Positions 2,172 to 28,980 of a stretch of DNA of 32,587 nt are shown in pieces. Below the pieces are notes generated by a model. That model was not told the origin of the DNA. It searched no databases and saw nothing but the letters and a program-made list of their open reading frames with translations. The stretch is from Macrostomum lignano (lineage: Eukaryota), in the NCBI GenBank assembly GCA_002269645.1, contig NIVC01003358.1, forward strand, positions 1 to 32,587, written 5' to 3'. Positions within the stretch are counted from its first letter, which is position 1. The number at the start of each line of letters is the position of its first letter. Position numbers and translations under genes: made by a program.

Positions 2172-4638
2172 CCGGAGTTTTTGGCCCGCTCGGACTAACT
2201 CTTGCTCGGGTCCAGCACGCAACTTCTGGTTCCCGGAGCGCGACCGTCGTTTCTTGATCCCCGGATTGCGACTTCCCCCCATCATCATCAAGGACGAATC
2301 CCCGGTCGTCAGCAGCGAACATCAAGCGAAGATCATCACCTGCTAGCTATTAGCGAAGATTGTATCAACATCATCCCGAGTCTACAGCTACAGAGCATCA
2401 AGCCGATTCGGTCACTGTGGATTACCTGGTCTCCGGCTGTTGAGTTTCTGATTGGTTGGGTAAGAGGCTACCTAGACTTGCTTGATTGGGTGATCCCCTA
2501 TCTGTCCCCTGTTTCAGTAGCTGAATTAGGCGCACACTTTTGCTCATTTTGTTCAGTAGTGCTGTTGCTGAGGCAGAAGTCATTCAATAATACTGCTAGT
2601 ATTCTAAACTCCAATTCAATCTGAAGTGTGAAGTGATCTAAGGAGAAGGTTAAACCTAACAGTTATTTTTATCGGTTTTATTTCTTCGTTCGCCGATGGC
2701 TCAGATGAGTAGCTAAGCTTGTAGGCGCCAGTCACAGTGGACCAATGGCAAGGCAGTTCTCAGTCGATCAATCTACCAAATCGGTGAGCAAAACTGCCAG
2801 AAGTGCAGAATCGGCGCCAGAGATGTACTTTGTGCACTCTAGGTTAGCCAAGCGGCTCGGGTAATGAATCATGCGGTCTCTGAAGTTCGAGTTAGTCTAT
2901 CATCAGCGCTATGAGAGGCTAGTTGGCGCGTTGAAGGCCAAAAGTACATATCCTCGTATTTAGCAATGTAATAGTACATGTAGCTACCCCATAGACTCGC
3001 CACTGCAAGAATCCCCTGCACAAGTCCCCTCTGTACCTGCATGGCCAATGCGATCTAGTCCCAGCAGTGTCCCTTATCATCGGCTATGACTTCGAGATAG
3101 ACAGCAAAAAGACACTAGTTGGCAGGTAAGCGCAAAGCCCCTTCTAGTCGGAAGCCCGATTTCGAGAGTCCCGGTGTGGTGAGCCAGGACGCACGGGCTG
3201 GTGGCAGCGAGTTAGCTTAGTCTGCGGGTTAGCTAATTTCTACCTTCAAAATTCTCCCTGCTTGTCTCTCGCTGTCCCTCTCTTAGCTATAGGACCTAGA
3301 CTGCTCGCCACACGATCAAGCTACCATGGGGCTGACCATCTGACAGGAGTGGGGGGCCAGGTCTCTAAGTGATTTGTTTCTGAGACCTGAGGCCCGAAGG
3401 CTTCCCTAACAAGGGGCCTGAAAGGTCGAAACCCATCAATATCAATTGGTTGAGTTTCCTTTTTACTAAGAAGGCATTGTGGAAATTAACGAAGTAATAA
3501 AAATAGGAAAAACTAAGATGGGCTTCGTTGATCTGCTTAAAAACAATCATGCCTTCATTGAGCTGGTAAAATTCCTTGATAGCATTATTTTACTAAATTT
3601 TTACTAAATAGTTCTCAGCCTTTGCTCAAATCGTTTTGAGCATGGACTCGGGCTGCCCAACGTTTCCGCACAGACTGCTGACCAGCTTCAAGTTTGTCAT
3701 GCTGAGCGAGGGAGCATTTAGCTGCTTGAGAGACTCTTGAAGTGCTTCGCTGCTGTTGTCAAGACCACTCTTGATTGGATTATAAACACACGGAGCCTTT
3801 GAGATGCTTAGAAGGCTCGATGGATCGACGGGAACAAGATGGGCGTTCCCCAGCGCGGCAGAAGTAAGGTCTTGCATTGCCTTACTCTCGCCAGAACACT
3901 TGCCGTTTATTAATTGCCAAACTCTTGCTATCCATTTCTCGAAATAAACTTGGAGGGAAGCCGAGATGTAATGTACTCAGGGAAACCATTAGTATTCACG
4001 CTAAATGAGTCAATATGACCTATAACAAGGGGCACATGTCATACTGTTATACAGTAATTATGGGTCAGTGCAGAATTTGTTTGCACCTTTCTTGCAGTTA
4101 CGTACATTATATACATACCATGCAATAGCTTGTACATTGCTTTTATTGCTTTTAAAGCAAAAATGAGTTCCTAACTCCTGACTCCATACTCTGTAGCATG
4201 CAAATTTTAGAGAGTGCGAGTATTACTGCATGCCTGTCCGGTCGCAGGTGCAGATCCAGAAAATTGTGAATGGGGGCTATTGATTTTTTAACTACTATAT
4301 TGAACCACAGTATATCCCTTTTGATTTATTTTATCCATATAAAACAAAAAACACAAACGCTCGTATCTAAAAAATAAAATTATTTTGACTTTATTTTGAC
4401 TGGTCTATTTTGACTTCATACATGTATAACTACATGTACGAGCTCGATCGTACAGGTAATAAAATATGCTGAATGTGCAACTGAGAAGTGATCAAGATGC
4501 GATTTAACAGAAACGCGCAAGATTAAGGCTTGCGATTGAATTGCACTACTTTCAATTGTGCAATTGAAAGTTGCACTTCAACTTTGCTATTGTTGAATAC
4601 ATTGTTGAATACACTTCAACAATGCTTTGTGTATACAT

Positions 4639-5788
4639 TCAGGGTGTATTTTCGTCCTTGACACGGAGCCTCATCTGAGGATCGATGTACACTTCGTGCA
4701 GCTGTCTGGACAGAGTGTTGTGCTCGCAAATCCACTCGCCCGGACTGCGCTCGTAAAGCAGCCTGCGCGATCTCAGATCGGACATGCGATAAAACGACAC
4801 AGCCTGGAAGCAGCTCTCCACCTTTACAGGCGGCAGGTTGTTGGGTGCATCGCGAAGCGACTTTTCATAGCTGACCACGGGGTACTTTGTGTCCTCACCG
4901 AAGCGCTTGTTCAGGTGGAAGCTCAGCGTGCATGGGTCGTAAATGTTGCCTTTGTACGTGGTGTGAGCGCACAGCTGCTGCAGCTGGGGCTTCGCAGCGA
5001 AGTAATAGACACCCTGTGCTATATTGTCCAGATCCCACTCCATCCAACTTATATCCGGGTCGATTATGAGCAGCATCGATGCCTGATCAGCCAGGTGTTT
5101 GTATATGTAGTCCAGGTACTGGTTGCGCAGGGCGGACATTATCAGACCGCGCTCGACTTCTTCAGTGAAGCTGCGCTTCATTTTGAAGCCGGGCTTGTGT
5201 ATGCGACCGCTGCTGTAGCGAATTTTGACTCGGCAGGGCAGCGGGGAGTTGACCCGGCCGCAGCCCAGCAGCGTCACGGTGGGGTCAGTAAGTGTTAAAT
5301 TGTGCAAGTAGTCGCGAGTCAAGTCGGTCGAGTCGTTCTCAAGCAAGACCAGCCAGGAGCTGTTGAACAGGGCTCGCAGGCGCTGGATGTTGTGCAGGGA
5401 GCTCGGCAGACCGGCCATGCCGTTGCGCACGGTGGCTGCCACACGCGCGGCTCCTCTCGGCTCTTGACAGCCGCATGAGGGGAAGCAGCCGGCCGGGCCT
5501 ATCGAACCCGTAAAGCGAGCTGTTCATGCGATCAAGCACGTGCAGGTACAGCTTCTTGAAGGCGGCATCAGTGCTGTTGGCGATGCCGAACGGAGACTGG
5601 GGAAGCAGCTCCTCATTGGACTGGTACTCAGGTTGCGAATCGAAACTGTTTTGACTGAAGTGCTTCTGATGCAGGCAGAAAAATAGAAATATTAAGGTAG
5701 CGCCCACTGTCACGTAAAGACTGGCGACTCGTCGAATTAGAGCAAATTTCTTGCAGCGGATGTAGCAAAACCTAATCTGCTGAGCCAT
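4639..5788 (-). CDS. GT-A fold glycosyltransferase-like protein (CAP59/GT69-like motifs), type II membrane protein, ~382 aa, interrupted by a 1-nt frameshift near 5440-5450
   Basis: ORFs 5339..5788 and 4639..5442 overlap out of frame; the span of 1150 nt equals 383 codons + 1 nt. The N-terminal part has a basic tail, TM segment (VASLYVTVGATLIFLFFCL) and stem. The C-terminal part has AATVRN, LENDSTDxT, MSALRNQYL, a DxD motif (DPD), VESCF and CEH. GC-rich codon usage in AT-rich flanks. Confidence 0.72.
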
Positions 5789-6787
5789 TGCAGTTTAGAA
5801 ATGTGACTGCTAATTTGCAGTTTCGCTGACTCGATTGATGACCTCAAAGCGCCTCTTTGCAAAGAGAGGCGCGCAGCATCGTATTGCTTAATTAATAAGA
5901 TAGATTGCACTTGAAATAGTAATGCAGTGCGGAGGCTGTTTTTCCGGCAAGTTCCCAATGGAGTTCGTTCGGCCTTTCACAATTCACTGCGCAATGATCA
6001 CTCACAACTCATCTTGGTGTAAGGCTGTAAAATAGCACAATTCATGCCCTAGCTAACTGGATCTGAGCCCTGCTGGGATTTTATTTGATACCAGCTCGTA
6101 TGTATATTCATCTCGCAAGGCTGTCCAAGTGGGGCAGGAAACTTGGGGGGTGCTCTAGTCGGGCTACCCTCCAATAGAGAGAGGCGTGGATTCGCGATCA
6201 GAAATTGTGTAGTCAAACCAGCCCTCACTTTCTACCAATCCGAAGCTGAATGACTATCCGAAGCTGAATTCAATTCAAACACAGCAGGGACCTCTGGACA
6301 CTTGCTTTGAAAACCGACCCTGTTCTGGAGTTTCATTTGTTCGTTATAATTTAGGGAGTTTCTCTTGTTTCATAGTGCATGCATCGATCTTTAATGTACA
6401 TGAGCCACCCACCCCCTCTCTCGCTCTACTTAACCCACCCCAAGTTAAATCTATATAACTAAAATTCATAACTAAACAGGTGCAATTTTTGAATGTTTGT
6501 TTTTTAGTGTGTTTGCCTGCGCGAGACCGCAGAAGTGTTGAAGGCACTTTAAACATCCGACTTTGCTTAGTTAATTATTTTTTTGTTTTCAAAATTAGCC
6601 GATTCCGTCGCTCCCTTCCGAAGGCGATGAAACATTCTTGGCTATAGGTGGCCTAGCGCTGGTGCAACCGCCTCCCATGTGGGCCTCTGGCTGTTGGACA
6701 GACGGGGCATCTATCCCATGGCGCTCCTATAGCACGGCACCCCTACCCCAAGACATCTATTATACGGCAACTATCCTACGGAATCTA

Positions 6788-7707
6788 CATCTATCCCACG
6801 GCATCTATCCCACGGCATCTATCCCACGGCATCTATCCCACGGCATCTATCCCACAGCATCTATCCCACGGCATCTATCCCACGGCATCTATCCCACGGC
6901 ATCTATCCCACGGCATCTATCCCACGGCATCTATCCCACGGCATCTATCCCACGGCATCTATCCCACGGCATCTATCCCACGGCATCTATCCCACCGCAT
7001 CTATCCCACGGCATCTATCCCACGGCATCTATCCCACGGCATCTATCCCACGGCATCTATCCCACGGCATCTATCCCACGGCATCTATCCCACGGCATCT
7101 ATCCCACGGCATCTATCCCACGGCATCTATCCCACGGCATCTATCCCACGGCATCTATCCCACGGCATCTATCCCACGGCATCTATCCCACGGCATCTAT
7201 CCCACGGCATCTATCCCACGGCATCTATCCCACGGCATCTATCCCACGGCATCTATCCCACGGCATCTATCCCACGGCATCTATCCCACGGCATCTATCC
7301 CACGGCATCTATCCCACGGCATCTATCCCACGGCATCTATCCCACGGCATCTATCCCACGGCATCTATCCCACGGCATCTATCCCACGGCATCTATCCCA
7401 CGGCATCTATCCCACGGCATCTATCCCACGGCATCTATCCCACGGCATCTATCCCACGGCATCTATCCCACGGCATCTATCCCACGGCATCTATCCCACG
7501 GCATCTATCCCACGGCATCTATCCCACGGCATCTATCCCACGGCATCTATCCCACGGCATCTATCCCACGGCATCTATCCCACGGCATCTATCCCACGGC
7601 ATCTATCCCACGGCATCTATCCCACGGCATCTATCCCACGGCATCTATCCCACGGCATCTATCCCACGGCATCTATCCCACGGCATCTATCCCACGGCAT
7701 CTATCCC
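6788..7707. repeat. 14-bp minisatellite (CATCTATCCCACGG), ~65 copies
   Basis: Near-perfect tandem array read directly, with two single-base variants near 6856 and 6996 and degenerate copies at 6707-6787. Confidence 0.97.
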
Positions 7708-9410: not shown

Positions 9411-9923
9411 TTATAGATCTGCATGTACTTATAGATCTGCATGTACTTATAGATCTGCATGTACTTATAGATCTGCATGTACTTATAGATCTGCATGTAC
9501 TTATAGATCTGCATGTACTTATAGATCTGCATGTACGTATAGATCTGCATGTACTTATAGATCTGCATGTACTTATAGATCTGCATGTACTTATAGATCT
9601 GCATGTACTTATAGATCTGCATGTACTTATAGATCTGCATGTACTTATAGATCTGCATGTACTTATAGATCTGCATGTACTTATAGATCTGCATGTACTT
9701 ATAGATCTGCATGTACTTATAGATCTGCATGTACTTATAGATCTGCATGTACTTATAGATCTGCATGTACTTATAGATCTGCATGTACTTATAGATCTGC
9801 ATGTACTTATAGATCTGCATGTACTTATAGATCTGCATGTACTTATAGATCTGCATGTACTTATAGATCTGCATGTACTTATAGATCTGCATGTACTTAT
9901 AGATCTGCATGTACGTATAGATC
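9411..9923. repeat. 18-bp minisatellite (TTATAGATCTGCATGTAC), ~28 copies
   Basis: Near-perfect tandem array. The variant GTACGTAT occurs near 9537 and 9914. Confidence 0.97.
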
Positions 9924-9963
9924 AGGATCACTTATAGTACTTATTGAAAAGGCAAAATCAAAG

Positions 9964-12900
9964 TCAACCGGCAGCAGCCGCTGCGCTGCTGTTGGCCGCC
10001 GAAGATGTCAGGCAGTACGCTAGCGCGGCTGAAGCCGTCTCGGCACCGCGGATCCCGAAGCAGGCAGATCCGGACCCACCGACGCCTCCACCTCCGCCGC
10101 TCCACAGGTCCGCGACTATCGCGGCGAAGCCAGCGGCGACGATGAGGCAGCCAAAGGCGGCGGTGGCCAGCAGCGGGAGGTTTGCCAGCCGGCAGAAGGG
10201 CTCGTCCTGCAGCTGCAGCACACACAGCGGCGGCAGGATGAAAGCGAGCGGAGCCGCTGTGAGGATGCCCTGGGTGAGGGAGGGGTCGGTGAGAATGGTC
10301 TCGGGATGAATACATCCAGCTATTATTCGTGAACTTCAAAAATTCCTCACATTCAGCTGCAGAACAATGTTAAGACAAGGTGTTGCCATGGAGACCAGAA
10401 ATGCACAGCCGACGACGGTGCCGGTGACTGTCACGTGGCGCCAGAGCGGCGAGCCGGGGCGCTGGAACAGAAAGGTCTCCACGACCTCTCTGACTACGAA
10501 GCAGTCAACTGGGAAGGTGAGCACGAGAGATGCAGCGAACAGCAGCCGGGAGAAGTTGATCAGGTCGTCCCAGCTGCAGTAATTTTCCAGCACATCGGGC
10601 TGCACAGCCGAGGTGAAGGTGGCGAAACCGAGGGCGCCGAAGATGCCGAAGATCAGCAGGCAGCTGCCAACGGCGGCGTGCGACACGAGCGACCAGCGCG
10701 ACAGGCTGCGACGCTGCAGCGAGTGAAAGCACAGGTGCGTGCTGTGCTGGCACATGAAAGCTGCAGTTTAATATGAGGGTGTCGTGAAATGCTTGCCACC
10801 TCTTCCTGTGAGCGTTGCAGTATGCAGTGCTCGTGCTACTGATAAGCGAATCAAGAAGTGCTTGAGAAACGATGCGTCTCACCGGCAGCCATAATGCACA
10901 CGGCCTGGGGAACTCTGTCATTGGCGAATGTCCACTCAAACTCCGCAGGCGTTCTGGTGAAGCAGGGTTGCAGAGCCATGAAAGCCTGATGCAAACTCAC
11001 CTTGCGCTTTCACCTCATTCTAAATTTGCCAGTGTAAATACGAGCAAACTGGAAGTAGCTTTCAAAAGATATCCCTAACAAAGAGGAACACGCGAGGTAT
11101 CAATATTCATATCCTCAAGGACTATACTGACGACAGGAATGGTAATCTTCACTGCCCCAGATCAAATACAACCATTGGTTTTGTAATGAAAAATCTTTTT
11201 TCCTATCTCCACAGTGCATTTTTTGCAGGAAATCATGGCCTCCAAAAAATTGCACTATCTTTGAGTTTTACGTCCTGCTATGATGTAGTGGTCCGGCTGT
11301 CTTCGTTTCCCTTGCTTCCTGTTTGTTTTGATTTTATTCACCTGTACATTACATGATTCTCTGTACTAAATGTTTCTGGAGCGGCTAAAAACTATTACTT
11401 GTAGTTTTACCAGAACAGTACGTGTATGTGTATTGAAAATACTTTCCTTATTTTCCTTATATTTCTACTATTAGTAGAGTATCAAAAAATTTTCTTTTGC
11501 AATCTTATAAATTTAGTATGCTGCTACGAGTTATTTTACTGCAAATAAAGTATCAATAAATTAGAGGCATTGTGGTTCTATTGGTATACTTGAATTAATC
11601 GATTTTGCTGTTTCTGTATACGCTATTTCGTGGCGGTCCGGCCAAACAAATCAATTCATAAGTATGCTGGAGCGGGCTACTACAGCTCGTGAAGATCTCA
11701 ACTGCAAATGCAACTTTAACTCAGCAACTTTAACTCAGCACTATGCTTGATACTGTATGCCTGAGAACCGATGCTTGAGCGCGAACAACTTACGCAACAG
11801 GCGAGTAGGCGGACAGTCTGGAGGCCATGGAAACCATGATGAGGCACAGAACCGCAGTTGACAGAAGCGACGTCTGAAATACAATGGAAACGGGCGACCT
11901 GGGATATCCGAAATTCGGGAGGTAAGTAAATAAAACTCTACCAGTGCATTAGTAACCATAATAACCCCAACACTGCGTTCTCATGTTCTGCGAGTCAATT
12001 TGCTGCTAATATGCTAAAAAAATAAATGTTTATCAACTCTTTTATCCAAGGCGCTAGACGTGTGTAGCGTTAATCGCAACTGGCTCGGCAAATGTCCCTG
12101 GGTTGAACCACAGACAAGCATTTAAGGATATGTGCGCATTTTGCTGCTAGAGTCAAACCGTTCCTGCTACACTCCATAACGAACTGCCCAGCCAGCCAAG
12201 ATCCATTCGACATGCGGGAGATTCTCACTGTGCAAGTGGGTGGCGCCGGCATCCGGCTAGGAAATCAGGTGAGCCTCTATAATTAAAACTTATGAAGGCG
12301 TATGGAAAATTCATAGAAAACTTCCTAATTCTTGTATGCCTGAAAACAGTTCTGGGACTACATTCGGACGGAGCACGGGGTGGACCACCTGGGAGTGTAC
12401 CACGGCAACAGCCACCTGCAACTTCAGTACATCGATGTGTACTTCAGCGACATCGAAATGAAGCGACACGTGCCGCGGGCTATCCTGGTGGACTCCGGCA
12501 ACGTGACAGACTCGACCAAGTACAACAGATGGCAGCTGCCAATGCTCATCACCCTGCCGCACGTGAGCGGCTCGGCTGGCACGGGCAACGTTTTCTCGCA
12601 CGGACTGCTGCACCGCAGCAAGGTCGTCGACAACCTGATGGAAAACTTCCGGCGCGTCAGCGAGACTCTCGAATCCCTCCAGGCCGTGCAGGTCATCCAT
12701 GCCATCGGCGGCGGCACTGGCTCGGGCCTCGTCAGCGCATTTCTGCGCGAACTGCGCGACGACAACACCCGGCTGGTAACGACCTGGACGGTGCTGCCCA
12801 GCCCGGTGGTCTCGGACAAGGTGGTCGAGCCCTACAATGCAGTGCTGAGCGTGCCCGCTCTGATCGACAGCGCCGACGTGGTCTGCGCAATCGACAACGA

Positions 12901-15900
12901 GGCGCTCGCGCGCATCGGCTCCGGCAAGCTGCGCACCGCTCACCCGAACTACGACGTCATGAACTCCGTGGCCGCGCTGGCCATGTCCGGCACTACCGCC
13001 TGCGTCCGGTTCCCCGGCCAGCAGAATTCCGACTGGCGCGGCGTCACCGCCAACCTTGTGCCGTTTCCCCGGCTGCACTTCCTGACTCTCAGCCAGGCTC
13101 CGCTGGCCCGCAATTTCGCCGAGCAAAGCCGCAACCTCGGCCCGCAGGGTCTCATGCAGGTGATTGCTTATCCAGTGATAGCTTTTTGATAGGGAAATCC
13201 TAGTTCACCTGGCGCATCTTTCGGTAGCTTTGTCAGTTCTATTAAAGATCGCATATTCACCAAGATTTAGATCCACGATTTGTAAGACAGCTAGGATAGC
13301 AGAATATGCGCGATGCCGGATAGCAGCGACTCCTTCGGCATTCTTATTCATTGTCGGCTTGACCGTACCTCAGGAACTTCGACAGGCGATGAGAAAGTAC
13401 AAAAGATTTCATTCTAAGAGATTCGAGGCGCTTGCTCGGCTTCAGTATTACAATTCAAAGGCTTTCATTTCAAGGCGAGCTAAAAATTCAAGGAGCACTA
13501 ATCCAGTCCAATTGCATTTTCATTTAGCTCGTGACTTAGAAACTACCTCAGAAGCAGCCAAAGCAATTTTTTTCTTGCAGGAATTGGTGAGCAGGGAAAA
13601 TTTCCTCATGCACTGGGACGACAAACAGGCCCGCTACCTGGCCTGCGCTGCCCTGTTCCGCGGCCGGCTCAGCATGGCGCAGGTGGACGCGGCAGTCGCC
13701 AAGGCCAACGGCCGCATCGCCAGCAGCGGCCTGGTGCCGGACGCCGTGATGCGCTCCGTCTGCGACATCCCGCCGCCGGGCTTTACGGCCAGTGGGACGC
13801 TGGTGGCCAACCACACCGCCGTGGCCCGCGCGCTGGCCCGCTCTGTGGACAAATTTCGCAAGATGTTCAAGAAGCGCGCCTTCATGCACTGGTACGAGGG
13901 CCTCACCGAGGCGGACTTTGCCGAGGCCGAGAAGCGAACGGTTGACTTGGTTGCAGAGTACATCCAGCTGGAGCGGCAGCCAAAGCAGGCCGGTGGAGTC
14001 GACGAGCAGTGGTGATCTGGGCGTGGCCCAGTCGGCTGCTGATGCACTTTCGGTTCGAACTACTCAGAGAAAAAAATTCCAAACAACTTGATTTTCGTTT
14101 AAGTTATAAATTTCAGTTGTGCATGGTATAAGTTGTTTCTGAAAATTGAGTTTCTCTGGGTCAAAAAATTGCACTGCCGACTGTCGGGAAATAAACTTGA
14201 CCTTTCAACCTTTTTGTTCGTTGGCTCGCGTAAAAGTTAAAAAATGAAAAAATGCTTTCGTAGCTACTTTCATTAAATTTTAATTTAAAGCTACCTTGCA
14301 AAGTGCATCTCATCGCATACCTTGGACAGCTTAGAGATGTTGCGGTACAAGCTGAGCGGCAGGCAGACGAACAGCGAAGCGAGGAAGACGGCAAAGTTTC
14401 GGTTAGCCAAAACTGAATGGCGCGCCTCCGCTGTGGGATTTGGAATTGGAATTCGAGCTCGTGGATCCATTCTGAGCTGAGATTCATCGACGCTCAGCAA
14501 CGAATTTACGGCACCCAATGATTAAAAATTTACTCACGTCCTCGAATCCGAATGACAATCTCGGCTATTGAGTCCCCAATTATGACATTGTAGCTGACCA
14601 GAGCTGGAGTCCAGTTAAAGGGAAAATTGTGCACGCATTGGCGAGGTAAACAGGCTAGTACTCGCACGGGTCTAAAAGTGGTCCTTGGCCTAGTACTCGC
14701 ACGGGTCTAAAAGTGGTCCTTGGCCTAGTACTCGCACGGGTCTAAAAGTGGTCCTTGGCCTAGTACTCGCACGGGTCTAAAAGTGGTCCTTGGCCTAGTA
14801 CTCGCACGGGTCTAAAAGTGGTCCTTGGCCTAGTACTCGCACGGGTCTAAAAGTGGTTCTTGGCCTAGTACTCGCACGGGTCTAAAAGTGGTCCTTGGCC
14901 TAGTACTCGCACGGGTCTAAAAGTGGTCCTTGGCCTAGTACTCGCACGGGTCTAAAAGTGGTCCTTGGCCTAGTACTCGCACGGGTCTAAAAGTGGTCCT
15001 TGGCCTAGTACTCGCACGGGTCTAAAAGTGGTCCTTGGCCTAGTACTCGCACGGGTCTAAAAGTGGTCCTTGGCCTAGTACTCGCACGGGTCTAAAAGTG
15101 GTCCTTGGCCTAGTACTCGCACGGGTCTAAAAGTGGTCCTTGGCCTAGTACTCGCACGGGTCTAAAAGTGGTCCTTGGCCTAGTACTCGCACGGGTCTAA
15201 AAGTGGTCCTTGGCCTAGTACTCGCACGGGTCTAAAAGTGGTCCTTGGCCTAGTACTCGCACGGGTCTAAAAGTGGTCCTTGGCCTAGTACTCGCACGGG
15301 TCTAAAAGTGGTCCTTGGCTAGTAAGGGACTAACAGTGGTCCTTGGCTAGTAAGGGACTAACAGTGGTCCTTGGCTAGTAAGGGACTAATAGTGGTCCTT
15401 GGCCTAGTATTCGCACGGGACTAACAGTGGTCCTTAGCCTAGTATTCGCACGGGACTAACAGTGGTCCTTGGCCTAGTACTCGCACGGGACTAACAGTGG
15501 TCCTTGGCTAGTAAGGGACTAACAGTGGTCCTTGGCCTAGTACTCGCACGGGACTAACAGTGGTCCTTGGCTAGTAAGGGACTAACAGTGGTCCTTGGCT
15601 AGTAAGGGACTAACAGTGGTCCTTGGCCTAGTACTCTCATGGGACTAACAGTGGTGCTTTGACACAGGACAAGAAACTAGCGGACTCACAGATGAAGGGA
15701 TAGACGGCCTGCATGGCGGTGGCAGTCAGGTAGCCCGCTTTGCCGAGGGAAACTCTGGCCATGTTCTGAAAAGCGGATAAAATATGCCTGGCGTTGCCGA
15801 TGCCACAGACAAGGACAACTCGCAAAGGAATGCAAAAAATTGTGTTAAGCATTCTCTCCTTTATTTTCATGCACCAACTGAACTTCAGCTCTGTTTTTTT

Positions 15901-18543
15901 CACCGGTCTCCAATGGTATTTATTATGTCGTCCTTGCCCACAGTACTGCACACAGACATAAGATCTTTGCCTCCTCCTTTACTGTTCTTCATTAAACGGT
16001 CCGGCATAAAACAAGTTAATTTTGAGTCAATAGAACAGAACAAGTGGCTAATACCTGATAAGAGACGGTATTTGAGAGGGCGCCTCCGGTGACGATGAGG
16101 TGGATGGAGTAGTCGGTGGCCAGCGCCACAGCAGCCAGCAGCAGGAGGCCCAGGCCGATGCCGGAGCAGTGCAGGGCGAAGGGAATGCCTGGTGGCGGTT
16201 CGGGGCTCATTGAGAAGGCGTGTTGTGTCTGTTCAGGTGACCCCCGATCTAGTCTGGACACCTGATCTGGTCTCCCAGGAAATACCGGATCTAGTCTCGC
16301 GATGGACACCTGATCTGGTCTCACAGGTAATACCGGATCTAGTCTCGCGATGGACACCTGATCTGGTCTCACAGGTAATACCGGATCTAGTCTCGCGATG
16401 GACACCTGATCTGGTCTCACAGGTAATACCGGATCTAGTCTCGCGATGGACACCTGATCTGGTCTCACAGGTAATACCGGATCTAGTCTCGCGATGGACA
16501 CCTGATCTGGTCTCCCAGGAAATACCGGATCTAGTCTCGCGATGGACACCTGATCTGGTCTCACAGGTAATACCGGATCTAGTCTCGCGATGGACACCTG
16601 ATCTGGTCTCCCAGGAAATACTGGATCTAGTCTCGCGATGGACACCTGATCTGGTCTCACAGGTAATACCCGATCTAGGTCGTAGTTGCAAGGCATCTAG
16701 TCTCACGGCATCTAGTCTCACAGAGGACACCCGTTTTAGTCTTGTAGGCAACACCCGGTGTAGTCTAAAGTCGTACTGTACATTTATAGTCTTTATGCTT
16801 TATTAATGCTACATGGGTACTTACTGCTCTGGAAAATTAAAGTATAATTATTTTTTTGCTTCCATGCTTGCAGCTCTTGCTACATACGAGTACAAACTAA
16901 CGGGTATTAAACATATGGCTCGTATTTCACACATTCAGATGGAAAAGCCAGTACACACGCATTTCTGGGCATATCGTTTCCAATAATATGGAAGCTTTAA
17001 TTAGAATTTCTCAAATCCATACTTGTCACTCGCCACAAGCCAGGGACAAGGGCAGCCAGAATAAAGTGCAGCGGAGACAACAGGCAGGCTGCAGGAGACT
17101 TAAACTACAGCTACAGGCCTTGTGAGAGTATCCGACTTTGGGAGTTCTACCGCAAATCCCAGCTACGCAGACCCTCACGCATCGGCTCACGTCGGAGCCC
17201 GCAGGGGTGCCGGAGCAGCCGCGCCTCCCAGCAGTTTCTGCTTGCTGCCCGCACGCCCACCGCCAGTGGAGGCCACGCGATGCGGACAGCCGCCCCGGCC
17301 GCCAACTTTTCCCCAGCTCTCTGCCGCATCGCGTGCAGGCTATGGGAGGCAGCCAGTGACTGGCATTAAGAGAAGGCGGGGCAGGCAATAGGCAAGACAC
17401 TACTGAGCTGGGGCTGTAGCAGCTTATTGCTTTTCCTGGTGCAGGAGGTGCAGTACGCACTGTGCCACGATGCAGGTGTCCATCATTCACATTAATTGGA
17501 TTCGCCCCAGCTCTAACAGCGGAGTTGCAGTTCCACGCAAGGCATTAAGCAGCTTTAGACAGGAATTATTCTGAGTTCAAGGTAAATTACTGACCAACTA
17601 TGCCCGAGCCGATGACGGAGTTGACCACATTCACAGTGGTCATGAGCAGGCTGGATCGGTGGTCCTCATTGTCGTCATCGCAGCTGGCTGGGAAGACTGC
17701 AGAGTTCCAGGTTGCTGTCTCGTCTGCCACGGGGCTCTCAGCACTACCGGCGGTAGCCAGCGAGTCTTCTGCAGAGGAGACTGAGTGAGAGCTCTGCAAG
17801 AGGCGGGAGGAAAGTTTATCAAAGCTGATCGATCTCGGAGTTTCAGTCTGATCTACCACAGGGCCCGTAACACAGGTCGATCAGCAATTTTTTTCATGCT
17901 GGTCCTCACAGTTTAAAAGCAAAACTAAGTTTAGAAATCTATAAATAGTGCTTAGCAGTGCACAAATGTGAGAAATGGTGCGGTGCCGCAGCGGCAAGTG
18001 CTGTCCAAGCGGTTCCCGCATCCGGCAGCGGACTTCATGCATAATTCAGGCATCGCTGCTCAGCCCGGACTATTGAGTGGCGGGGCAGCAGCTCAAGCTT
18101 TGCCAGGCCCGGGCCAAGTTTGGCACTGAAGAATTCTAATCTGAGAAGAAGCCGTCTCAACAACTGAGCTGAGCGAAATACCTGCTGATGATGACGCTGA
18201 AAATTCTGCGCCAGGCCAAGCCGCCGATCTGCCGGATTCTCCAGCAGCGCTTCGACCGCGTCGAATTCGTTCTTCGGCTCTGCCGCTGATTCAGCCGGGG
18301 TGGTCGGGGATGGGCGATGGAAAAGGCTGGCTATAGTGTGCATAAAATGCATTGCAGTCAGCCTACATGTCATAAACCTAGCACCAAACACAGGCTATCT
18401 TAGAAAGCTCTCTGGAAGAATTTCCTTAAATAATGAATGTTGTCTCAGCATTGTTTTAAACGAAATTTGAGCCTTCAATAAACTTCTCATCAATTTTATG
18501 TGCTTTATCAAACGCCCTATACTTAGGTGCAATACTTACCCAT
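9964..18543 (-). CDS. SLC38A11: SLC38A11-like amino acid transporter (AAAP/Aa_trans family), 11 coding exons, ~519 aa
   Basis: Hand-spliced exons, all GT-AG and phase-compatible: 18543-18540, 18285-18182, 17793-17595, 16188-16055, 15765-15690, 14603-14538, 14430-14321, 11873-11794, 10953-10883, 10760-10351, 10269-9964 (1560 nt). Motifs: NSVIGSGIVGIPFA, VYPFISLVSYNVIIGDS, LPLSLYRNISKLSK, AFMCQH, DVLENYCSWDDLINFSR, LTFPVDCFVVREV, AAPLAFILPPLC. The two 5' exons are less certain; exons 3-11 are strong. Confidence 0.9.
12212..14015 (+). CDS. TUBB-like: Highly divergent beta-tubulin-like protein, 3 exons, ~433 aa, nested antisense in the transporter intron 11874-14320
   Basis: Exons 12212-12268 (MREILTVQVGGAGIRLGNQ), 12350-13159 and 13581-14015, all GT-AG and phase 0. 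Motifs: MREI, VPRAILVD, GGGTGSG, VVEPYN, IDNEAL, RFPGQ, NLVPFPRLHF, CDIPP, AFMHWY. RFPGQ, PFPRLHF and the intron after codon 19 are beta-type features. Confidence 0.92.
14190..14195 (+). terminator. Candidate polyadenylation signal of the tubulin-like gene
   Basis: AATAAA ~175 nt after the stop codon, still inside the host intron. Confidence 0.4.
14655..15655. repeat. 35-bp minisatellite (CTAGTACTCGCACGGGTCTAAAAGTGGTCCTTGGC), 19 near-perfect copies followed by a mixed 28/35-bp variant zone; intronic
   Basis: Period of 35 read directly for 14655-15320. Variant units with GACTAACAG and TAGTAAGGG occupy 15320-15655. Confidence 0.96.
16243..16678. repeat. 48-bp minisatellite (dimer of two related 24-mers), ~9 copies; intronic
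   Basis: Unit CCGGATCTAGTCTCGCGATGGACA + CCTGATCTGGTCTCACAGGTAATA, with CCAGGAAATA variants. Confidence 0.95.
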
Positions 18544-18662: not shown

Positions 18663-19480
18663 CTCAATTTCAAGCCTGCTTCCAGTGGGAAAGGCCTCTA
18701 CACCCTTTCCATTGTGTAGCTAACGTGGTTGTGGGTGTCTCATTTGAAACAACACAGGAAGTGTGGCGACTTGCAAGCCCGGCAGATCTGTCAGCTCACC
18801 TGATAGCATCCCAGATAAGCTGAGGCTTGAGCACCGACCGATTACTGCAGGATTTTTTCAGGAATAATTGTAGATCAAAGCCTCATTAAACCGCACAAAG
18901 ACAGATCTCAATACTCAGCTCTCAGCATTGATCCTCGTGCGATCAATGAGCCCGCACATACATGTATGGACTCACAGCTTCAGGCTGGGCCAAACAACTA
19001 AGCTTTGATCCCTTGCTGGCTCCGGGCTGAATTGTGAGATTGTGACTAGCAAGCTACTTAGCTACCTACACCCGCATCAACTCTGCTTTCCTCAAGAGAG
19101 GTGGCAACAAAGAGGGAAAGTGCTCACAAAAATCAACAGCTGGCAATAACAGTAGTACGCTCGTATAGCCAAGATACATGTGGCAATGCAGTAGTAATCA
19201 ATTCAAACAGCCATAACCAAGAGCAGGTATACATGTGAAAAGTTCCTGGTGTTGAGATGCTTTCAACATCTTTCATCTTTCTTTCAACAGCTTTCAAAAT
19301 TCCTGGTGTTGAGATGCTTCTCTGATGCTTTCAACGTTCGCGAGTTTTGAAAAGAGTTTTTGTGTTTTTGCATGCATTGCAAAGTCGGAAGGTCCATCCC
19401 AATACGCACAGTCCCTGACTTTGCCTTGTTAGACAGTCGGTAGTATTCTGGATATTTTCAATTGGGCTGGAAGCAATGTA

Positions 19481-20796
19481 TGCACTCTCTGCATGCACAG
19501 CACACTAGACGCACTCTCGGCATGCACAGCACACTGAATGCACTCTCTGCATGCACAGCACACTAGACGCACTCTCGGCATGCACAGCACACTGGATGCA
19601 CTCTCGGCATGCACAGCACACTGCATGGATGCACTCTCTGCATGCATAGCACACTAGACGCACTCTCGGCATGCACAGCACACTGCATGGATGCACTCTC
19701 GGCATGCACAGCACACTGGATGCACTCTCGGCATGCACAGCACACTGCATGGATGCACTCTCTGCATGCATAGCACACTAGACGCACTCTCGGCATGCAC
19801 AGCACACTGGATGCACTCTCGGCATGCACAGCACACTGCATGGATGCACTCTCGGCATGCACAGCACACTGGATGCACTCTCGGCATGCACAGCACACTG
19901 CATGGATGCACTCTCGGCATGCACAGCACACTGGATGCACTCTCGGCATGCACAGCACACTGGATGCACTCTCGGCATGCACTCTCGGCATGCACAGCAC
20001 ACTGGATGCACTCTCGGCATGCACTCTCGGCATGCACAGCACACTGGATGCACTCTCGGCATGCACTCTCGGCATGCACAGCACACTGGATGCACTCTCG
20101 GCATGCACTCTCGGCATGCACAGCACACTGGATGCACTCTCGGCATGCACAGCACACTGCATGGATGCACTCTCGGCATGCACAGCACACTGGATGCACT
20201 CTCGGCATGCACAGCACACTGCATGGATGCACTCTCGGCATGCACAGCACACTGGATGCACTCTCGGCATGCACAGCACACTGCATGGATGCACTCTCGG
20301 CATGCACAGCACACTGGATGCACTCTCGGCATGCACTCTCGGCATGCACTCTCGGCATGCACAGCACACTGGATGCACTCTCGGCATGCACTCTCGGCAT
20401 GCACAGCACACTGGATGCACTCTCGGCATGCACTCTCGGCATGCACAGCACACTGGATGCACTCTCGGCATGCACAGCACACTGGATGCACTCTCGGCAT
20501 GCACTCTCGGCATGCACAGCACACTGGATGCACTCTCGGCATGCACTCTCGGCATGCACAGCACACTGGATGCACTCTCGGCATGCACTCTCGGCATGCA
20601 CAGCACACTGGATGCACTCTCGGCATGCACTCTCGGCATGCACAGCACACTGGATGCACTCTCGGCATGCACAGCACACTGGATGCACTCTCGGCATGCA
20701 CAGCACACTGGATGCACTCTCGGCATGCACAGCACACTGGATGCACTCTCGGCATGCACAGCACACTGGATGCACTCTCAGCATGCACAGCACACT
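19481..20796. repeat. Compound minisatellite built on GCACTCTCGGCATGCACAGCACACTGGAT (29 bp), with 33-bp and 42-bp variants
   Basis: Read directly. Variants arise by a GCAT insertion and by duplication of the 13-bp GCACTCTCGGCAT. Confidence 0.96.
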
Positions 20797-22000
20797 GTAG
20801 CTGTGATAGCAGTTCAGGTATTCATAGTTCATACGAGTCTCGTATACGCAAACCAATATAGAGCCGCAGAGCTTCAGTTTGCACTCCCAGTCACTGCCAG
20901 TCAGCTGCAGTCCACATGAAGATCTCATTAGTAATTTCTGCCTTTTTTCTTTCGCAGACCGCGCCCATGCAGTCAAGTTGTATCGATTCCACTGCTGCCG
21001 CTGAGCTGGGAACTTGAAACTGACGCATGCCGGGTCGCAGCTTTCCCGCTCAAACTCACCTGCACGACGATTGCCGGCATGCCTCCATGGGATTATTGTG
21101 CACTCGTACTATTGTCGTGCTTGTTATTAACTGTCAGTCTTGGACGATCGAGTGATGATTTTGCGTTTTGGGCGTCAATGCTGTTTATGTCGTTAGCTTG
21201 AATGGATCGTTCTGCGACCCGTGAGATTAATACACTCCTACTTCAAGTAGTAAAGCTCAGGCAAACTAAAACGAAATGAGTAAAAATAGAAACTATGCAC
21301 TCGTAGGTGCGAGCGTAAGCACTTTTAGAGCTAGATTAGCAATCTGTGCCGCTCCCCGTTGTTGAGGCTACAATTTTTTGAATAAACTACATGTATAGGT
21401 TTTGGCTTTGTAAGTCAACTGATGATCTCATAAGGAAAATGACGTTTTAAAGCAGAATAGCATCCGCCCTGAAAGCCAGCTATGCAGCCTAAGATATCAG
21501 CATCCCCTATGATGTTCGGCTCAAAGCATCTGAGCAATTCCTATGAGCCACAGAATTTCAGCGATTCCCCATATGAGCCTTGACATCTCAGAATTTTCTC
21601 ACATAAACCTTGACAACTCAGCGATTCCCCCTCAGCCACACAATTTCAGCGATCTCACCATGAGCTTTGAAATTTCTCCTGCGAGTTTTGACATCCCAGC
21701 GCAAATGCTATGTATGTCATTAGCTTAGAACTACTGTACCCCTCTACTTGTATTTAACTTAATCAATCGCAGAGTATCAGCTACACAGAAGAAACTATAG
21801 GCATATGCTGTATTATATAGAAATGATATCGATATCTCTGATTTAGATACGGTGTGTGCTGTTAAAGCACTCAATGGTGGCTTTTTACACTGTACACGTA
21901 GATTATTCGTAGTTAATATTAATAATATTAAATGCTAGAGCACATATACAGTCGCGCCAATACTGTATGCAGCTCATACACACACTCAGACAAGGTGTAA

Positions 22001-22714: not shown

Positions 22715-23137
22715 CACTCATTTACCCAAGTTTCAGGTAAGACAGAAGCTTTCTCTATGCCCAACACAGCCACTCATTTACCCAAGCTTCAGACAGAAGC
22801 TTTCTCTATGACCCAACACAGCCACTCATTTACCCAAGCTTCAGACAGAAGCTTTCTCTATGACCCAACACAGCCACTCATTTACCCAAGCTTCAGACAG
22901 AAGCTTTCTCTATGACCCAACACAGCCACTCATTTACCCAAGCTTCAGACAGAAGCTTTCTCTATGACCCAACACAGCCACTCATTTACCCAAGCTTCAG
23001 ACAGAAGCTTTCTCTATGACCCAACACAGCCACTCATTTACCCAAGCTTCAGGTCAGACAGAAGCTTTCTCTATGACCCAACACAGCCACTCATTTACCC
23101 AAGCTTCAGGTCAGACAGAAGCTTTCTCTATGACCCA
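22715..23137. repeat. 52-bp minisatellite, ~8 copies; the last copies are 57 bp (CAGGT insertion)
   Basis: Unit CAGACAGAAGCTTTCTCTATGACCCAACACAGCCACTCATTTACCCAAGCTT; period verified at 22790 and 22842. Confidence 0.93.
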
Positions 23138-27515: not shown

Positions 27516-28980
27516 GGCAGTGACTATTCATCCGGTATCGGGTGAACAATGTGGATATTATTCGTCCGGTACCGGGTGAATAATGTCGTTTTTATTCGTC
27601 CGGTAGCGTTTAACAAAAGGAATGATGGTTGTTGACCGAAAATTTGTACATGCGCAATTGAAATTAATTTGCATCACTTCTTGTTATTCATGCTAAATCT
27701 TCTGTTCCAGCTATTAAGCATGTCGTAACAATGATCCTTCGCGATACAGGACGCTACATTTTTTGAATTGTGTAAACTAAACAGAAATTAATATACTGTC
27801 CGGTACCGGGGTGAATATCCCCATCTCTCTCTGTCTCTCTCTGTCTCTCTCTCTCCCTCTCTCTCTGTTTTTTTGGGTACAGAAGTTACGTTAAATGCAC
27901 GGTACATGTATGTCTGTGCATATTTAAGTAGTAAAATGTAAACACATGAAATAGGGACGCTCTACAGTGTACATGCACGTGAATTTGCTTCCGTAACCAA
28001 AGATTAATTGTAGGTTGATATTTTTACCACTCAGGAGATAAAAGGCTACGTCCATCGTATTTAAGTTTCATTTATGATGGCTTTACATGTATAGTATGAA
28101 AGCCGATGGTTCATATAAAAGCGTAAAATGGAGATCAAGAGGTTCACTTCAGAATTCAGATACACAGTGCTTTTCAATGCGCGCTGTGCTGCAGCCTACT
28201 GTCGCTTGCACACAAACCACCATGCACTTTGTGTGAAATTTGGGGTTTGAAAATTTCCATGCAATCTATGCATACACACGCATAAGACAACAATTCAATG
28301 GATCGATGAACCTTCACCATCAAGCACAAAGAAACTTGAGCCAATGTACATGCAGCTACTCATGAGATGAAAAAACATGCAATTGGTTGATGGACATATT
28401 TGTAGCTAGTTTTAATTAGTATTCAAAAAGTTCGACCTGCATGCTCATTGCCTTCTGATATTCTGATCTAATAAGTGGCGATCAATATAGAATGTTTATG
28501 GCTTGGCAAAAAACTAATATCAATAGAGACACACGCAGCATACTAGCTTTACTACTTTATCAAATGCGTCTTGATGCATTCGCTAGGTCCTCAACAAATC
28601 TAACTTCTGCTGTGCTGTCACATACCGTTCATGTCTGTCAAAGTTTGATGTTTTATATCAGTCAAATGATCAGAATTTACAAAATCCCCGTTCACTACAA
28701 ATGCAACTTCGCAACTTCGTAATACAATTCAAAAAATGTAGCGTCCTGTATCGCGAAGGATCATTGTTACGACATGCTTAATAGCTGGAACAGAAGATTT
28801 AAGCATGAATAACAAGAAGTGATGCAAATTAATTTCAATCGCGCATGTACAAATTTTCGGTCAACAACCATCATTCCTTTTGTTAAACCCTACCGGACGA
28901 ATAAAAACGACATTATTCACCCGGTACCGGACGAATAATATCCACATTGTTCACCCGATACCGGATGAATAGTCACTGCC
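27516..28980. mobile_element. Non-autonomous Mutator-like (MULE) DNA transposon, 1465 bp, ~256-bp TIRs
   Basis: TIRs 27516-27771 and 28724-28980 begin GGCAGTGACTATTCATCCGG and differ at about three positions by eye. Flanks TTTCTTTTT / TTTATTTTT fit a 9-bp TSD with one mismatch. No transposase ORF inside. Confidence 0.85.
27824..27866. repeat. (CT)n-type microsatellite inside the MULE
   Basis: Interrupted CT run read directly. Confidence 0.9.

Follow-up and report, generated by a model that had tools for sequence, protein, structure and literature searches.

A highly divergent beta-tubulin paralogue under purifying selection in Macrostomum lignano

Introduction

The nearest described analogues of the gene analysed here are the beta-like tubulins (BLTs) BLT1 and BLT4 of Tetrahymena thermophila, which are derived from beta-tubulin, are substituted in the guanosine triphosphate (GTP) pocket and at both their longitudinal and their lateral surfaces, and have kept the GGGTGSG signature (PMC3382179). 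Both are without the tail motif for polyglutamylation and polyglycylation, and tagging with green fluorescent protein showed them in non-axonemal arrays (PMC3382179). Among animals, chicken c-beta-6 (class VI) and Drosophila beta-3 are described as 'divergent' tissue-restricted isotypes that still co-assemble into microtubules (PMC2114845, PMC2116267). Here we analyse Mlig010323, a tubulin-like gene of Macrostomum lignano, copy g2 of which lies on contig NIVC01003358.1; this stretch of 32,587 nucleotides (nt) was studied at its full length and is referred to as the window. Divergent animal isotypes of this sort are ~75-90% identical to other beta-tubulins and have the loops of the exchangeable GTP site (E site) and the acidic tail, and Mlig010323 falls far outside that range.

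In tubulin, the T4 loop, the T5 loop (D177 and E181) and residues N204, Y222 and N226 hold the phosphates, the ribose and the base of the nucleotide. The T1 loop (Q11, C12 and Q15), the Glu of T2 and the T3 loop contact the phosphates and Mg, sense the gamma-phosphate and form the plus-end face toward the next alpha subunit. Lateral contacts are made by helix H3, the H2-S3 region (S denoting strands) and the M-loop, and the T7 loop of beta-tubulin faces alpha inside the dimer. Few eukaryotic proteins are as strongly conserved as beta-tubulin; Mlig010323 has broken away from this conservation and yet is kept intact in triplicate under strong constraint. The gene offers a natural test of which parts of beta-tubulin a tubulin-fold function can do without, and it may mark an uncharacterised cytoskeletal structure.

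Results and Discussion

Origin from beta-tubulin and extent of divergence

The spliced coding sequence (CDS) of Mlig010323 g2 comprises 1302 nt and encodes a protein of 433 amino acids (aa), which is a 100% match to GenBank PAA51787.1 (BOX15_Mlig010323g2, 'hypothetical protein'); the UniProt entry for the same product, A0A267DSZ2, has the automatic name 'Tubulin beta chain'. Membership of the tubulin superfamily was evident from the Pfam domain pair Tubulin (PF00091, 1.5e-35) and Tubulin_C (PF03953, 1.2e-17), from the fold and from the T4 signature GGGTGSG (residues 139-145). In sequence searches of PDB the top match was a beta-tubulin (2.7e-100) and the best 60 matches were all beta chains. 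An AlphaFold2 model based on an alignment of 54 sequences reached a predicted template modelling (pTM) score of 0.86 and a mean predicted local distance difference test (pLDDT) score of 79.9. When this model was compared with PDB in Foldseek, the best 50 matches were likewise all beta-tubulin chains (TM score 0.87-0.90).

BLASTP gave an identity of 40.7% between the protein and a canonical beta-tubulin, as compared to 29.7% with human alpha-1A and 29.4% with human gamma-1; both human sequences were confirmed as 100% matches to PDB chains. Canonical beta and alpha are themselves 40.8% identical in BLASTP, so the Mlig010323 protein is as distant from beta-tubulin as alpha is. In a neighbour-joining tree (Kimura distances, 200 bootstraps) it fell with the betas at the split between alpha and beta, amid other long-branch sequences, with the shortest distances to canonical betas (1.07-1.12) and longer ones to alpha (1.66) and gamma (1.68). 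The clade that unites it with canonical and divergent beta-tubulins had a bootstrap value of 59%, so the tree gives its place weakly and only to the level of the beta side. The placement among tubulin families that the initial annotation had called for is thus obtained in part: the protein falls on the beta side with alpha and gamma more remote, but at this bootstrap value, and the individual comparison of families covered alpha, beta and gamma.

Independent information on descent comes from the gene structure. The first intron of Mlig010323 is a phase-0 intron after codon 19, and this intron is common to canonical beta-tubulin genes of Echinococcus granulosus, elephant Loxodonta (TUBB1) and the soft coral Dendronephthya. 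The shared position argues for an origin of Mlig010323 from a metazoan beta-tubulin gene resident in the genome, and against a retrocopy, a contaminant or a member of another family. It is most improbable that we are dealing with a tubulin of the alpha, gamma, delta, epsilon or zeta family or with contamination from diatom food or another organism: although ~40% identity to beta is as low as that between alpha and beta, and the tree support is weak, the top database matches are all beta-tubulins (38-42%) against only 29-30% for alpha and gamma, the other families compared one by one, the MREI start and the metazoan beta-tubulin intron position are present, and alpha-specific insertions are not found. 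Moreover, the worm assembly has the copies of the gene on contigs of 33 kb, 439 kb and 527 kb, which fits the known redundancy of that genome. Taken together, with beta as the nearest family, an MREIL start at the first codon and the animal beta-tubulin intron position, the Mlig010323 protein is, as far as its sequence tells, a beta-tubulin by descent.

The degree of divergence was estimated from an alignment to 53 beta-tubulins of animals, fungi and protists. The Mlig010323 protein is 39-42% identical to each of them, whereas mean column identity among the 53 is 76%. In 74 of the 199 columns with at least 95% conservation in beta-tubulin it carries a different state, and the altered near-invariant positions include Q11, C12, N14, Q15, E69, N100, W101, K252, the M-loop Tyr and W344, which is deleted. 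Tajima relative-rate tests counted 152-203 unique changes on the Mlig010323 lineage as compared to 10-23 on canonical flatworm and insect betas (P<=1e-22), and the gene has evolved roughly 8-20 times faster than canonical beta-tubulins. The initial annotation had described an extremely divergent beta-tubulin, and the identities to beta, alpha and gamma, the shared intron and the changed columns all bear this out.

Purifying selection and expression

Three copies of Mlig010323 are present in the Mlig_3_7 assembly, on the 33-kb window contig (g2), on NIVC01001098.1 (439 kb) and on NIVC01000581.1 (527 kb), in agreement with the documented redundancy of the M. lignano genome (PMC5730564). Each of them has an undisrupted CDS with canonical splice sites. 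Divergence between copies is 0-0.9% in exons and 1.2-5.6% in introns and flanks. Ten codons vary among the copies, nine of them synonymously and one nonsynonymously; the sole amino-acid difference, at codon 427 in the tail, is G in the window copy and S in the other two. Nei-Gojobori ratios of nonsynonymous to synonymous divergence (dN/dS), which refer to the recent period since duplication within the genome, were 0.046, 0.053 and 0 in the pairwise comparisons of the copies; under neutrality, the binomial probability that no more than one of ten changes is nonsynonymous is P=2.4e-5.

An internal control was available on the same duplicated segment, where a CAP59-like (mannosyltransferase-like) gene is found ~7 kb upstream of the tubulin gene; its match to Pfam PF11735 is weak (E=0.005) and below the curated cutoff. 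At the same dS (0.019) the dN/dS of this gene was 0.72-0.81. It is intact (398 aa) on NIVC01001098.1, at 2672-3868 on the minus strand of the segment, and carries a 47-bp frameshifting deletion both in the window and on NIVC01000581.1, so that at least two of its three copies appear to be decaying. Since this neighbour decays at the same dS, decay of the tubulin copies would have been detectable. Our results show that Mlig010323 is under strong purifying selection in three copies and is not decaying.

The Mlig_3_7 GenBank annotation consists solely of RNA-seq transcripts, assembled with StringTie and TACO and filtered by expression (PMC5730564). Because the annotation is transcript-only, the Mlig010323 model and both its splice junctions rest on RNA evidence, and the gene is transcribed. 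As the annotation allowed multi-mapping reads, this evidence applies to the three copies jointly. The initial annotation had proposed selection and had named a dN/dS near 1 together with missing expression as the signs of a decaying copy; the ratio of ~0.05 among the copies, as compared to 0.7-0.8 in the control, and the RNA-derived gene model speak for the former and contradict the latter.

A pseudogene or duplicate in decay, or else an artefact of assembly or annotation, could in principle account for the very high divergence from beta-tubulin and for the frameshifted stretches in two older UniProt models of the gene (P0002 and P0009). We regard this as very improbable, as every copy has an open frame and canonical splice sites, nine of ten differences are synonymous, the neighbouring gene on the same segment decays while the tubulin gene does not, the model is derived from RNA, and P0002 and P0009 represent the same gene outside their out-of-frame stretches.

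Retained and rebuilt elements

The changes of loops and helices and the kept motifs that were listed in the initial annotation are all present in the protein (Table 1). In comparison with canonical beta-tubulin (bovine/human TUBB2B, PDB 3j8x_B / 4i4t_B; M. lignano P0026), Mlig010323 shares the fold, the domain pair and the first intron position, and the common sequence comprises MREI, GGGTGSG, SD.VVEPYN, IDNEAL, Y222 and N226 of H7, and VPFPRLHF. It differs by five small deletions, rebuilt T1-T3 loops, K252G and loss of the M-loop Tyr, and it has neither the acidic tail nor the axonemal EGEF motif. What sets it apart from canonical beta-tubulin is thus the E-site loops T1, T2 and T3, the tail, and a departure from the extreme conservation of the family.

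Identity to the beta consensus is unevenly distributed over the protein. The better-kept elements are H8-S7 (VPFPRLH, 100%), T4 (86%), T5 (80%), the T7 loop (70%) and S8 (70%), followed by the H1-S2 loop (61%), H5 (60%), the H11-H12 loop (58%) and H12 (48%). The most altered ones are S3 (0%), H10 (12%), T2+H2 (13%), H4 (15%) and H3 (19%); also altered are H8 (25%), T1 (33%), T3 (33%) and the M-loop (36%, with Y281S). The residues that contact base and ribose, D177, E181, N204, Y222 and N226, are all kept. The last 20 residues contain 4 acidic and 2 basic residues, whereas the 53 beta-tubulins have 9.1 acidic ones on average.

Positions that determine benzimidazole sensitivity are also changed, all of them: F167 to W, E198 to V and F/Y200 to C (residue 165 of the protein in exon 2, from 12350 onward, and residues 185-205 at 12845-12907). 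E198V is a classical benzimidazole resistance substitution in beta-tubulin. These changes are relevant only if the Mlig010323 protein enters microtubules.

Relatives and analogues

No nearer relative was found in database-wide searches. When 5.8 billion protein clusters were searched by word index, the plateau of ~40% formed by canonical beta-tubulins was exceeded only by entries of M. lignano itself, and an exhaustive phmmer search of 1.84 billion representative proteins gave no relative nearer than canonical beta. The top matches in both searches were beta-tubulins at 38-42% identity, everything else being lower, and the divergent phmmer matches that were checked proved to be fungal, hemichordate, Asgard archaeal or metagenomic proteins. 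Mlig010323 thus appears to be lineage-restricted, and among public protein collections there seems to be no better-matching class of which it could be an orthologue, which also answers the objection, raised beforehand, that it might belong to an already characterised divergent class.

Several long-branch beta paralogues are found elsewhere, such as fungal 'beta-tubulin 2' (Mycena, Flagelloscypha, Apiospora) and the 'beta-4B-like' protein of Ptychodera flava, which are 35-57% identical to canonical beta. Their identity to the Mlig010323 protein is at most 38%, below that of canonical beta, which indicates that they are parallel offshoots and not its orthologues.

The Tetrahymena BLTs resemble Mlig010323 more in kind than in sequence. 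C12A and T178K are identical changes in both, Y281 is replaced in both, and the Trp that is changed in the BLTs (W345Q) has its equivalent in W344, which is deleted in Mlig010323. The BLTs differ in that they arose independently and are specific to ciliates, and the exhaustive search brought out no special similarity between them and Mlig010323; furthermore, Mlig010323 alters more of T1-T3 than the BLTs do. The likeness is convergence, not orthology. Noncanonical beta-like tubulins form a functional grouping and not a clade, and the features by which they are recognised in sequence (beta derivation, substitutions at the GTP site and interfaces, GGGTGSG, no tail motif) are all found in Mlig010323. 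As such proteins have already been described (PMC3382179), the kind is not new, and Mlig010323 is an unusually extreme example of it for an animal.

The Mlig010323 tag and all of the accessions were absent from the searchable full-text literature, and the searched supplements of PMC5816591, PMC5730564, PMC7336406 and PMC12896417 do not list the gene; nor did these searches yield expression or localisation data for it. The proposal of the initial annotation that the gene encodes an undescribed cytoskeletal component therefore stands as regards the searchable literature, but the sequence itself is already in GenBank and UniProt and its kind is known from Tetrahymena.

Two older models, P0002 (79%) and P0009 (59%), were considered as diverged paralogues and rejected, being the same gene with frameshifted stretches: outside these stretches they are identical to Mlig010323, and the stretch in P0009 is frame 2 of the same DNA. 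In P0009 and P0275 (UniProt A0A1I8JPW5 and A0A1I8HZJ2) a spurious N-terminal extension is the antisense translation of an upstream Aa_trans exon. A separate observation concerns a Heimdallarchaeota (Asgard) 'tubulin beta chain', MDH5401500.1, among the distant matches; this protein shares 38.7% identity with canonical beta and 37.3% with alpha, and fell outside the alpha and beta groups in a rough tree.

Possible role in microtubules

We propose that Mlig010323 is a lineage-restricted paralogue derived from the resident metazoan beta-tubulin that evolved fast and is now strongly constrained. What the initial annotation read from the changed motifs, namely altered GTP/Mg handling, drug insensitivity, little glutamylation and neofunctionalisation as such, is inference at this stage. 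Guanine nucleotide may still be bound via the kept T4 signature, T5 residues D177 and E181, and N204, Y222 and N226, and pairing with alpha-tubulin could persist through the T7 loop and H8-S7, both of them largely conserved. The rebuilt T1, T2 and T3 loops, together with the lateral elements H2-S3, H3 and the M-loop (Y281S), would then change GTP-coupled dynamics and lattice contacts, and with the acidic tail and EGEF the carrier of polyglutamylation and polyglycylation would be gone. The protein would thus most probably be a noncanonical beta-like isotype for building or modifying a specialised set of microtubules, outside the axoneme, poor in modifications and probably stable, in some particular cell type, which would resemble BLT1 and BLT4 of Tetrahymena. 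We lean, with moderate confidence, towards a protein that binds nucleotide, pairs with alpha and, with altered dynamics, serves in a specialised non-axonemal set of microtubules.

Some of our own observations weigh against this proposal. With 74 near-invariant columns altered, the fit to the canonical lattice or to alpha might be lost. Confidence of the AlphaFold2 model is low for the tail and for residues 70-77, 89-98 and 104-106, precisely where T2/T3 is rebuilt. The branch is long, with no more than the 59% bootstrap given above for the clade with beta-tubulins, and the dN/dS test spans only the time since the copies arose.

The distribution of conserved and altered elements could also fit a non-polymerising regulator with a tubulin fold, which would perhaps bind alpha or a microtubule end and cap, nucleate or sequester. 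The elements at the plus end (E site) and at the lateral contacts (T2+H2, S3, T3, H3 and M-loop) show the strongest alteration, the alpha-facing T7 loop and H8-S7 at the minus end are kept, and the tail used by motors and severing enzymes is lost, as might be expected of such a protein. However, H12, the H11-H12 loop and the H1-S2 loop, outer and lateral parts that matter chiefly in the lattice, are among the better conserved, and their relative conservation argues that the protein still sits in the lattice. In addition, incorporation into microtubules does occur in the nearest analogues on record that carry comparable changes (PMC3382179). We therefore consider a regulator unlikely, though worth keeping in view beside the proposed microtubule isotype.

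Less likely still is that the protein forms half of a separate filament system, with an equally divergent alpha-like partner or with itself, that does not mix with canonical microtubules. Near-invariant positions are changed on both longitudinal faces, the intradimer face by K252G, deletion of W344, F341G and the alterations in H10, and the interdimer face by those in T1-T3, and noncanonical partners were proposed for the same reason by the authors of the BLT study (PMC3382179). On the other hand, the T7 loop and H8-S7 are near canonical, and no divergent alpha-like M. lignano protein surfaced, although the genome itself was not directly searched. In its boldest form, which we think somewhat more doubtful again, the protein would lie outside ordinary microtubules and form a second, insulated tubulin polymer, alone or with a divergent alpha-like partner, having its own nucleotide cycle and being invisible to the tail-based tubulin code. 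If true, such a polymer might build unusual structures of Macrostomum, for example parts of the aflagellate sperm; a literature search on Macrostomum sperm microtubules gave nothing usable.

The proposed role in specialised microtubules can be approached experimentally, as RNA interference by soaking, in situ hybridisation and transgenesis all work in M. lignano (PMC5730564; PMC11075559). Since the exons are ~99% identical across the three copies, one reagent would reach all of them, and the question is directly testable in this animal.

Gene structure and codon usage

All three forward frames of the gene region are interrupted by stop codons. The open reading frame (ORF) is consequently not unbroken, contrary to what had been supposed from the sequence, and the CDS is intact only after removal of two GT..AG introns (Table 1). 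Of the frame-keeping GT..AG pairs, the chosen combination agrees with both the beta-tubulin alignment and the deposited protein. Intron 2 contains stop codons in the frames of the exons, and exons 2 and 3 are in different frames on either side of it; its splice pair fits the alignment (LMQ/ELVSRENF vs LTQ/QMFDAKNM, the slash marking the junction) and reproduces the deposited protein.

Guanine-plus-cytosine (GC) content of the CDS is 0.65 and reaches 0.85 at third codon positions (GC3), and the strong codon bias noted initially is real in that sense. It is less of a distinction than it seemed, however, as GC3 values of 0.62-0.78 in nearby coding ORFs indicate that GC-ending codons are general in the M. 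lignano genome, with the tubulin gene at the high end.

Table 1. Positions of the tubulin gene, its elements and other features in the window
Feature	Position	Strand	Remarks
CAP59-like gene	4639..5788	-	
Frameshifting deletion in CAP59-like gene	after 5442	-	
Tandem-repeat array	6788..7707		
Tandem-repeat array	9411..9923		
Aa_trans exon	10336..10755	-	probably extends over ~9940-10940
Mlig010323 (copy g2)	12212..14015	+	three exons
Exon 1	12212..12268	+	codons 1-19 (MREILTVQVGGAGIRLGNQ); MREI N-terminus (at 12212) and altered T1 loop
T1 loop	12239..12256	+	GQCGNQ to GGAGIR
Intron 1	12269..12349	+	81 nt, GT..AG, GC 0.33; 1.2-4.9% divergence among genomic copies vs 0% in exon 1
Exon 2	12350..13159	+	residues 20-289; T2, T3, T4, T5, IDNEAL, H7, T7/H8 and M-loop (PLARNFAEQSRNLG)
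T2 loop	12491..12502	+	DLEP to DSGN, Glu lost
T3 loop	12578..12610	+	GAGNNWAKGHY to GTGNVFSHGLL
T4 loop	12707..12727	+	GGGTGSG kept
T5 loop	12821..12838	+	VVEPYN kept
IDNEAL	12890..12907	+	kept
H7	12959..12976	+	LNHLVS to MNSVAA, H227S
T7/H8	13031..13054	+	DLRKLAVN to DWRGVTAN; K252G in sequential beta numbering; neither the beta Lys nor the alpha Glu
Intron 2	13160..13580	+	421 nt, GT..AG, GC 0.42; 2.1-5.3% divergence among genomic copies
Exon 3	13581..14015	+	residues 290-433 and TGA stop
YEGL	13893..13904	+	from YTGEGM, two residues deleted
Non-acidic tail	13971..14012	+	ERQPKQAGGVDEQW
Codon 427	13992..13994	+	G or S among copies
Candidate polyadenylation signal	14190..14195	+	first AATAAA past the stop codon; predicted from sequence only
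Tandem-repeat array	14655..15659		
Tandem-repeat array	16255..16678		
Tandem-repeat array	19480..20797		
Tandem-repeat array	22740..23137		
Right contig end	27000..32587		AT-rich (GC 0.26-0.39), no ORF of at least 100 aa
Mini-array	27525..27605		34-bp period
Mini-array	28891..28971		34-bp period

Surroundings of the gene

The Aa_trans exon (Pfam 1.4e-14) belongs to an amino-acid transporter gene upstream of the tubulin gene and on the opposite strand, so that both genes point away from the ~1.3 kb of intergenic sequence that they share. The three copies of the segment are related in a mosaic fashion: the left part of the window (2753-7707) is 99.5% identical to the NIVC01000581.1 segment and ~95.5% to that of NIVC01001098.1, whereas the tubulin region (12073-15281) is 97.7% identical to the NIVC01001098.1 segment and only 93.8% to that of NIVC01000581.1. 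This suggests recombination or gene conversion between the duplicated segments, or a chimeric assembly.

Much of the non-coding window is taken up by the six tandem-repeat arrays, which have periods of 14, 18, 35, 48, 29/62 and 52 bp and up to 66 copies. They underlie most of the long spurious ORFs of the window, and their lengths vary among the three genomic copies. Rfam and tRNA scans of the whole window gave no matches. In the two mini-arrays near the right contig end the consensus units look partly reverse-complementary, and these arrays may represent the termini of a mobile element.

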